DNA of 63,800 bases, filler included, from Dicyema japonicum (lineage: Eukaryota > Animalia > Dicyemida): the NCBI GenBank assembly GCA_011109175.1. It is 14 parts of 14 records of this genome, joined end to end, with 100 filler letters (N's around TTAATTAATTAA, not from the genome) between each part and the next. Parts side by side here need not be neighbours in the genome. Positions count along the whole stretch, not along the records: positions 62,181 to 63,800 come from RDEW01000127.1; 13 more parts are not named here. One strand, written 5' to 3'. Shown here piece after piece: positions 61,274-63,800 of the stretch; position 1 is the first letter of the stretch, and each line of letters opens with the position of its first letter. Under the pieces are notes generated by a model. The model was not told the DNA's origin. It was given only the letters and a program-made list of their open reading frames with translations, and made no database searches. The translations under genes and the position numbers were made by a program.

Positions 61274-63089
61274 TAGTTTATTCTTAATTTATTTTTTAGG
61301 AAATTTAATTTATATATAAATTGACATTTTTATAAATAATTTTAAATATTTATATAATTTTCTAATATCACTTTCCCAAAATTGCATGTTTCCTAAACAT
61401 CCCTTTGGCCTCAAGTCAGATTATATCTAGAAGCCTGTCATAAGAAACCTTCCTCTTTGTGGAGATTAATTTAGGATTCTAAGACCAACCACAAGAGGAA
61501 GTTGGTATGGACATCTGGATCACTAGATTAGATGATGACTCTTATTTTCTTGTGGTTAATATATTAAATTATATTATTGCAACTAATTTCTGAAGTTATA
61601 TTTCCACAACAGGTCGTGTGGGTTTGATTCCCACACCCTTGCCTACTTGATGGAGGATTTCTCACTCCTCTGTGCTTTCTTCGATTCCCAGGAAGAGTCA
61701 TGTGATTCACCTTTCTCAAGCGACTCTCAGTGCCTGACCGGCAAAAGGATCACTTTTCCCTACTCCATTAGAGGTTTTTCACAATATGGGTGGATGTGAT
61801 ACTTTGAATAACCCGTCTTACTCCGATTGTTGAAGTTAATATACCTGTTATGGTTTTAAGGAGTACATTTAAATGACGTCATCATAGTTTATTAATTATT
61901 TCATCCATAATAATTAAAATAAAATTCCAATATGAATGACATTGTGATGGTTAAGGTGGTGACATACCACTATAGTATGAAATTATAAGCTATTTATAAT
62001 ATATTTTACAGCTGATTGTCGAAAACAATAGGCTGCCTCAGTTATTGAAAGCACGCGCTCTAGGCTGGGTCGTGTCCCCANNNNNNNNNNNNNNNNNNNN
62101 NNNNNNNNNNNNNNNNNNNNNNNNTTAATTAATTAANNNNNNNNNNNNNNNNNNNNNNNNNNNNNNNNNNNNNNNNNNNNAAAATTAGTCTGATCCGCAT
62201 GGAGGTTTGCCTTTTCCTCTTTGAAGATCGAGAAAATCAACTCATACTAACGGAAAATATTTCCTCTTTATTTGGATTGAAGTTAATAAAAAATATTTTA
62301 TTATTGAAAGAAAACGTTCATGCAGTTATGGAATATCTTTAAGAAATAACCCAATGTCGTAGTTAGTTTTTGATAGCACTCTACCTATTTTTGGTGGATT
62401 ACTAATAATTGCGCTAATTAGGAGGATGAAGAGAAGCCTTCAGCCAAATGGCCAACGGGAGAATCAATTAGTAAACTATCATTATAACATGAATCCTACT
62501 ACTTTTAATTGATCAATTAAATGTTCTATTTGAGACGGAAATAGAAACTTCTACGGCTACGCACAAGCTTCTGTGCCAGAGAACTTTTGATTACGAGTCT
62601 CTCTTTTGTAACCAACTAGGCAAAGGGTAACAAAACGGTTTCACGAAAATTTTCATTAGGGTCGGAAGTTAAGACCTATAAGAAGAATATTAATTCGACT
62701 GATAGTTGTAACCAACTAGGCAAAGGGTAACAAAACGGTTTCACGAAAATCTTCACTAGGGTCGGAAGTTAAGACCTATCAGAAGAATATTAATTCGACT
62801 GATAGAGTCATAACATCCTTCATGAGTGCAAGACTTCAATTAAAATTACAATGAGGTACGTGAAACTTTAGTTTCATTTCTTGGCAGTGCTTTCCTTCAT
62901 TACGATTCCGTATTTGAATACATGAGTAAAGGATCTGAGTTTTTTTATTATAACCCCCTAATTCATATCTCAACTCCCTTTCATATAAAGCTTATTAGGC
63001 TGCCATCTTCATCAATTAACAACCTCCTCCAGTCTCTTCCAAACGAAAATTTTGATCACTACCTTACTTGACTCCGAAGAGCGATTTAA

Positions 63090-63720
63090 AAAGAAAAATC
63101 ACCTTTTACACCCATAACGACGAACTCCCAAGTGGGCGTGTAAATAAAAATCATTCTTTTAATATATAGTGTTGGGTTTTCAAAACTTAAATTTTATTTT
63201 TTTTCGAAAATCAAGAGTCTTGAATTGGTCAGTAAATTGAAGATCGTTGCTAAAAGAAAAATCACCTTTTACACCCATAACGACGAACTCCCAAGTGGGC
63301 GTGTAAATAAAAATCATTCTTTTAATATATAGTGTTGGGTTTTCAAAACTTAAATTTTATTTTTTTTCGAAAATCAAGAGTCTTGAATTGGTCAGTAAAT
63401 TGAAGATCGTTGCTCTAAAAAAGGCGGATATCGTAGATTCCGTACAATTTTGTAGCCGATCCGTCGATTCCAATCCCAAAAGCCCATCCCCGAACTTATC
63501 CACTGCCCCTGCTGCTGTATAATAAATCCTTATACTGTTTGCGAGTATCTAAGTGTGGAGAATTCACCAACCAAAGATCTTCAAGACTCCCAGACCAGAA
63601 TGCGACCATCAACTTCCACAAAGGCTCCGTAAACGGAAAATAGTCTTCTTTTCAGTGAAATTTAGTTTCTAAAGAGAAGAATAGCCAAATCTTGCAACCT
63701 TTGCAGAAGATAGTATTTGT
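63090..63720 (-). pseudogene. FARS2: Mitochondrial phenylalanyl-tRNA synthetase (FARS2) fragment, decayed
   Basis: FH*KEDYFPFTEP, AGAVDK(F)GWAFGIGID, KLYGIYDIRLF*SNDLQFTDQFK..KKIKFK, VKGDFSF; stops at both conserved Trp positions (TGA 63652-63654, TAG 63415-63417), frameshifts, probable 21-nt intron; 163-bp tandem duplication 63090-63413. Confidence 0.75.
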
Positions 63721-63800
63721 AATTAATCAAAAAATTATTATTTTAAACCCAAGACACCAATTGAAGTTGAAATATTTCCAAAGATCACAGTTAAAAAAAA

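Follow-up and report, generated by a model that had tools for sequence, protein, structure and literature searches.

A probable pseudogene of a mitochondrial-type phenylalanyl-tRNA synthetase in a fragment of the Dicyema japonicum assembly

The locus and its likeness to monomeric phenylalanyl-tRNA synthetase

The window is a stretch of 63,800 nucleotides of Dicyema japonicum DNA, and the piece under study is its 1.6-kb part at 62181-63800 (34% GC), in which the longest open frame on either strand spans at most 75 codons. The minus strand of this piece carries, at 63343-63800, a relic of the catalytic core of a mitochondrial-type phenylalanyl-tRNA synthetase (PheRS), laid out in one 152-codon frame whose first full codon starts at 63798 and which runs past the edge of the piece. 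Alignment places the relic in the C-terminal half of the class II core, beginning shortly past motif 2 and reaching the end of the core. With its stops written as codons, the frame reads ..NFNWCLGFKIIIF[TGA]LITNTIFCKGCKIWLFFSLETKFH[TGA]KEDYFPFTEPLWKLMVAFWSGSLEDLWLVNSPHLDTRKQYKDLLYSSRGSG[TAA]VRGWAFGIGIDGSATKLYGIYDIRLF[TAG]SNDLQFTDQFKTLDFRKKIKFKF[TGA]. Within it, the Phe-binding loop YFPFTEP (63622-63642) is intact, and the segments DIRLF (63432-63418), SNDLQFTDQF (63414-63385) and KIKFKF (63363-63346) follow one another toward the closing TGA at 63343-63345. The relic core has a GC content of 42% against 28-37% in the flanks, as expected of former coding sequence.

The downstream flank (62181-63088) contains no recognisable coding sequence, tRNA or RNA family. 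Scans of 62181-63800 returned no tRNA and no Rfam family, and the other stop-free segments of the piece held no Pfam family at the curated cut-off. The best Rfam candidate was snoR118 (E 0.78), whose covariance model matches 62978-63063 on the minus strand with a non-significant 19.3 bits against a gathering score of 44.

The 152-codon peptide, with X at the stops, aligns colinearly with residues 234-327 of E. coli PheS (47 bits, tblastn), and its Smith-Waterman score against that protein is 113, compared with 28.7 +/- 4.3 in 2000 shuffles (z = 19.8). Reference loci were collected by scanning metagenome contigs for DNA encoding (G)WAFG.G-x12-DIRLFW, which yielded 119 loci; a mitochondrial-type PheRS profile was then built from 64 near-full-length sequences, all of them metagenome frames that carry no annotation. 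The five whose Pfam architecture was checked, taken as stop-free frames round the match, all have PF01409 and PF03147, the architecture of the monomeric mitochondrial enzyme. This profile scores 52.5 bits against the piece (E 1e-17) over profile positions 212-306 of 403, and it matches no frame other than that of the relic. Judged from these alignments, homology to the PheRS catalytic core is beyond chance. The original prediction of a FARS2-type peptide is thus borne out, with YFPFTEP, GWAFGIGIDG and DIRLF all in one minus-strand frame, by a z of 19.8 and a profile E-value of 1e-17.

Those same two values exclude chance resemblance as the explanation of the locus. A decayed bacterial pheS, from an endosymbiont or a contaminant, would account for YFPFTEP and NDLxFxxQF, which are also typical of bacterial PheS. 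Several features favor the mitochondrial type instead. The relic carries the mitochondrial signatures GWAFG and DIRLF(W) rather than the bacterial GFAFG and DLRxFF, and the Trp of DIRLFW is present in read contigs. The 26-residue segment VRGWAFG..DIRLF matches Pfam PF01409 with an E-value of 0.007, and in the PDB its best match is human mitochondrial PheRS (E 0.005), with bacterial PheS proteins at 0.07-0.4. Among the fetched monomeric PheRS sequences, the best-matching ones give Smith-Waterman scores of 150-164 with the relic and a bacterial-looking group gives the lowest, 69-83. Furthermore, open reading frames in the piece do not exceed 75 codons, which is not what bacterial DNA would show. 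We regard the likelihood of either a chance match or a bacterial relic as negligible.

The relic probably continues upstream of the piece edge. A loose end of a contig from run X5 extends 30 letters past 63799 and, read in frame on the minus strand, gives ..GIRRDHINSC|FFNCDL. The string GIRRDHINSC resembles the motif-2 segment YRRDEIDA of the profile consensus, a likeness that is suggestive only and that points to a probable extension upstream. The earlier proposal that the 5' part lies past the edge agrees with this reading.

Assembly artefacts and differences supported by reads

Read evidence was drawn from Logan contigs of four runs from two samples; contigs of this kind lose rare variants and carry no information on expression or copy number. 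The piece contains two tandem duplications. Positions 63089-63251 are an exact second copy of 63252-63414 (163 bp; 2.0 copies at 100% in TRF), and 62606-62705 is a 97% identical second copy of 62706-62805 (100 bp). Both are collapsed in the reads: contigs X1-3 and X3-11, from runs X1 and X3, pass from 63088 to 63252 unbroken with a single 163-bp copy, and a contig of run X1 joins 62605 to 62706 with a single 100-bp copy. At a genuine tandem junction, contigs from a k-mer assembler would end. Since independent contigs run straight through as one copy, both duplications were most likely made by the assembly, through overlapping contig ends being joined head to tail. Two collapsed duplications of this kind suggest that three smaller contigs, joined without merging of their overlapping ends, make up the 1.6-kb piece.

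These artefacts alter the picture drawn from the sequence at first reading. The span initially proposed for the gene, 63090-63720, does hold part of a real relic, which occupies 63343-63800 and goes on beyond the edge, but it also includes the artefactual duplicate. The frameshifts proposed there do not stand, because the apparent shift GDFSF|SNDLQF is the junction of the exact 163-bp tandem duplication, and no frameshift interrupts the 152 aligned codons, all of which lie in one frame.

Inside the frame, the window and the contigs differ at three positions. At 63416, contigs of X4, X1 and X3 have C for T, with all depth on that other letter, so that the TAG at the Trp of DIRLFW (63415-63417) is TGG in sample S1. 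At 63452, the contigs have A for G, which changes Thr to Ile and brings the residue nearer to the family consensus. At 63686, all four runs, including that of the second sample, have T for C, so that the codon at 63685-63687, TGG in the window, becomes TAG in the contigs. None of the three is synonymous, as would be expected where purifying selection is absent, and two of them exchange a stop and a Trp codon. Each is also a change between CpA/TpG and TpA.

Could a functional FARS2 look broken through base errors and mis-joins? Poor assembly of this kind is documented at the piece by the two duplications, by the three base differences in the relic together with five transversions in 62404-62576 relative to read contigs, and by the TAG at 63417-63415 that is TGG in the reads. 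This explanation is largely refuted by independent contigs at depths of 40-733, which keep the TGA at 63729, the TGA at 63654 and the TAA at 63498 and add a TAG at 63687-63685; the lost catalytic residues are likewise unchanged in them, apart from the Thr to Ile change at 63452. We therefore give an intact gene hidden by assembly error a very low probability. The idea that both conserved Trp codons have become stops fared unevenly in the same reads: the TGA at 63654-63652 holds in the contigs, whereas the TAG at 63417-63415 is TGG in all three S1 runs.

Other discrepancies lie outside the frame. Contigs of run X3 carry a TCTT insertion after 62381 relative to the window, and contigs differ from it at 62404 (A>T), 62450 (G>T), 62516 (A>T), 62520 (A>C) and 62576 (C>G). 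All five are transversions, an odd spectrum for natural variation, and these differences may be assembly errors. Loose ends of run X1 contigs at 62313 and 63527 end in AGATGTGTATAAGAGACAG, which we take to be the Nextera transposase adapter; the library was presumably tagmentation-based, with some contigs ending in adapter.

In-frame stops, lost residues and the missing anticodon-binding domain

Neither version of the frame is open. Its internal stops, in order, are TGA, TGA, TAA and TAG in the window and TGA, TAG, TGA and TAA in the read contigs. The first TGA (63727-63729) is kept in the contigs. The second (63652-63654) occupies a position that is Trp in 51 and Phe in 11 of the 64 real enzymes. 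The TAA (63496-63498) falls in the variable loop before GWAFG. Including the closing one, the relic frame has five stops, compared with eight and nine in the other two frames and with 10.9 expected from base composition (Poisson P about 0.02-0.04). On this count, the preserved frame would mean either that the decay is young or slow or that some constraint on the frame persists. Repeat-induced point mutation was considered and rejected: the TpA/ApT ratio is 0.77-0.91 and the (CpA+TpG)/(ApC+GpT) ratio 1.05-1.26, which is not RIP-like, and the five substitutions between window and contigs outside the frame are transversions.

The loop that contains the TAA is long. From FPFT to WAFG the relic has 51 residues, and the reference sequences have a mode of 42 and a range of 42-53. 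A candidate in-frame GT..AG micro-intron, or insertion, lies at 63509-63535 on the minus strand, starting at 63535 and ending at 63515, 63512 or 63509 (21, 24 or 27 nt). Removal of 27 nt, an in-frame excess of nine codons, would bring the loop to exactly the modal 42 residues. We estimate the chance of such a GT/AG pair in a loop of this size at about 0.2. The TAA at 63498-63496 lies outside the candidate and stays in frame, and a micro-intron that removes it was rejected, as no GT..AG pair does so while keeping GWAFG. A micro-intron in the relic loop is thus possible on the sequence but not needed, the loop length being within the natural range. The retained intron that had been put forward earlier is not confirmed, and the candidate cannot carry the argument that the locus is not a processed copy. 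Among the reference loci, the open frame starts a few codons before GWAFG in L024, L074, L096, L103 and similar eukaryotic-looking ones, which suggests that many reference genes may have an intron near the loop where the relic shows its nine-codon excess and its TAA.

In class II synthetases the motif-3 arginine never varies and binds ATP; the relic has Gly in its place: at 63460-63489, GWAFGIGIDG stands for GWAFGLGLER. The changes, seen on alignment to human mitochondrial PheRS and to the 64 sequences, are R268 to G and E267 to D, and the R268 column is 100% conserved in the 64 sequences. The strand LEDLWLV (63565-63585), in place of the conserved (W)LEVLGCG, has lost both glycines (G240 and G242) and carries E237V. 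After YFPFT, the next conserved residues S, E and E are replaced by L, K and M (S224L, E226K, E228M), and the Pro of IPDIR is also lost. Conservation was counted over columns conserved in at least 90% of sequences, minus 11 forced by the search pattern; this leaves out the GWAFG and DIRLFW columns, where conservation is forced by that pattern, and gives 21 independently conserved columns. The relic retains 10 of these 21; of the full set of 32, real sequences retain 28 or more.

The C-terminal domain could not be recognised either. Past DIRLFW, reference enzymes run on for 98 to 283 residues that form the FDX-ACB anticodon-binding domain, whereas the closing TGA of the relic comes 23 codons past DIRLF(W). 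No frame of the approximately 900 single-copy nucleotides downstream gave an FDX-ACB (PF03147) signal with Pfam pieces, with the full or a C-terminal profile, or with the C-terminus of E. coli PheT. The domain could lie beyond a long intron. Read without gaps against the consensus KFKPYSKYPPCYKDISFWL, the sequence after the core, KFKF*KPNTIY*KNDFYL, could be a heavily decayed counterpart. Remnants of FDX-ACB downstream, including KIKFK and DFSF, were nonetheless rejected because the Pfam pieces, the E. coli PheT C-terminus and the C-terminal profile are all silent; the suggestion that KIKFK and DFSF are C-terminal motifs of FARS2 is therefore left without statistical support. A second PheRS relic at 62181-62500 was rejected as well: three weak tblastn matches are colinear there, but the frameshift-aware alignment scores 35, against a shuffle mean of 30.6 and below the shuffle 90th percentile of 36, and both the profile and Pfam are silent.

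With the motif-3 arginine, the LGCG glycines and the S, E and E gone, and FDX-ACB not found, the relic is, as far as its sequence can tell, non-functional whatever the genetic code. This bears directly on the reading of the locus as a live gene under a nuclear code in which all three stops are sense when internal (TGA as Trp, TAA and TAG as sense). Nuclear codes that read all three stops as sense internally occur in Condylostoma, karyorelictid ciliates and Blastocrithidia. A code of this type would fit the TGA at 63654 and the TAG at 63417, both at Trp positions, the depletion of stops relative to the other frames over 152 codons free of frameshift, and the interchange of TGG and TAG at two codons between sequence versions; the possible 21-27 nt micro-intron would also suit lineages with tiny introns. 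Yet the catalytic residues are missing under any code, the frame ends or degenerates 23 codons past DIRLFW where real enzymes continue for at least 98, and the piece holds no tRNA. The changes from TGG to TGA and from TGG to TAG would each be single G to A changes, as expected in an AT-rich genome. No code in which TAG stands for Trp is known to us. A live gene under a variant code is in our view very improbable, since the catalytic residues are gone, the domain is missing, the versions differ non-synonymously and single G to A changes would produce the Trp-position stops.

A second version of the locus and the meaning for mitochondrial translation

The region is not simple single-copy DNA, as a diverged second version occurs in the same sample. 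In sample S1 this version has about 1/3 to 1/6 of the depth and is 91-93% identical over approximately 62712-63184, where an indel of some 21 nt falls near 63023-63043; over 62712-62950, the low-coverage run of sample S2 shows this version alone. One contig matches 63073-63184 (equivalent to 63236-63347) and then diverges from the window. Another joins the window at 63498, at the in-frame TAA, and is preceded by nearly the same unrelated string. Joined together, the two contigs suggest that about 35 unrelated bases in the second version replace the 150 nt encoding VRGWAFG..KIKFKF. The second version may be an allele, a strain variant or a paralogue. In the flanks, 62181-62400 and 62991-63098 reach a summed contig depth of about 1400-2100 in run X4, where the relic has 733, a two- to threefold excess, and several unrelated contigs share only 62200-62236, which indicates that the flanks contain repeated sequence.

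A further reading takes the locus to be a diverged PheRS-like paralogue, held in frame by selection for a non-catalytic role, in which the stops are recent or specific to one version. The preserved 152-codon frame, the in-frame nine-codon loop insertion and the deficit of stops would all be natural under such selection. Against it, internal stops number four or more in each version observed, no difference between versions is synonymous, and the variant version, as joined from its two contigs, appears to be without the whole motif-3 segment. Furthermore, HMMER searches with short pieces found no homologue of the diverged part among 1.84 billion representatives. Given the loss of the catalytic residues, the missing domain and the non-synonymous differences, we rate a non-catalytic paralogue as quite improbable.

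We consider it likely that the locus is a non-functional relic, or pseudogene, of a nuclear gene for a monomeric, mitochondrial-type PheRS. The decay that was originally proposed is upheld by the loss of catalytic residues under any code and by stops that persist in independent read contigs. We infer that no active enzyme is made from it, that the relic is nuclear and that its substitutions reflect AT-biased drift. In this account the decay has proceeded by point substitutions, not by indels: codons at Trp positions have turned into TGA or TAG, the TAA has arisen in the loop, and roughly half of the residues that are otherwise invariant, the motif-3 arginine and the LGCG strand among them, have been replaced. 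The FDX-ACB domain expected after the core is missing or unrecognisable, and young or slow decay would account for the preserved frame.

Compared with human FARS2 and yeast MSF1 (PF01409 and PF03147), the relic shares the YFPFT.P loop, GWAFG, DIRLF(W), an ending of the form ..D.RF..QF and a colinear core; it differs from them in its four stops, the replaced motif-3 Arg and LGCG, the undetectable FDX-ACB and the early end of the frame. The narrower result is that the relic is real and that several of its apparent defects are assembly artefacts. Were an intact FARS2 present elsewhere in the genome, a mitochondrial PheRS pseudogene would be ordinary.

The broader reading is that the relic is the organism's only FARS2 and that mitochondrial translation, and probably mtDNA too, has been lost. 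Henneguya salminicola is reportedly a myxozoan without mtDNA in which nuclear genes for mitochondrial gene expression have become pseudogenes. It is named as a known eukaryote without mtDNA in a passage of PMC11034133. The present case resembles it in having a decayed nuclear gene whose only known role is in mitochondrial translation, in an AT-rich and highly fragmented assembly; the loss of mtDNA and of other mitochondrial expression genes, and the lack of an intact FARS2, would here be predictions from one relic on a 1.6-kb piece. Parallel losses of mt-tRNA genes and nuclear mt-aaRS have been described in Cnidaria, Ctenophora and sponges (Pett & Lavrov 2015, PMC4558845), and the relic would likewise represent a mitochondrial aaRS gene that a nuclear genome is losing. 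In those animals mt-PheRS was never lost, even after the loss of mt-tRNA-Phe, and the reason proposed is that the cytosolic PheRS, with its two subunits, probably cannot be imported (PMC4558845). The loss of a sole copy here would therefore go beyond that pattern and, as mt-PheRS is reported never to have been replaced in animals, a sole decayed copy would be a strong marker of the loss of translation. Amoebophrya ceratii, an aerobic eukaryote likely without mtDNA (PMC6482013), offers a precedent for a eukaryote without mitochondrial translation.

One remnant cannot show that mitochondrial protein synthesis has been given up. A dead copy is favoured by the existence of a second decayed version and by the repeats around the locus, and we regard the sole-copy reading as unlikely. 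If true, it would mean that the organism no longer translates in its mitochondria, a state known from very few eukaryotes, and would add a further independent case beside Henneguya salminicola.

Searches for close relatives of the relic came back empty within their scope. A word search of 5.8 billion proteins with a 51-aa piece and a read-supported 50-aa piece returned nothing, as did the HMMER search described above. PDB searches with pieces A and C gave no match, and the ESM Atlas search and the exact look-up of seven ORFs were blank. The length limits of all these searches confine the result to short stretches, so that it does not extend to full-length relatives.

The collection of reference loci yielded a separate observation. 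Low-GC metagenome contigs encode monomeric PheRS proteins of 378-410 aa with GWAFGFG and DIRLFW, at L016 (965-2098) and also at L002, L004, L062, L088, L091, L092, L095 and L119. L016, the one that was scanned, carries PF01409 and PF03147 and lies among densely packed ORFs. The members of this group look prokaryotic, although their architecture is usually called mitochondrial.
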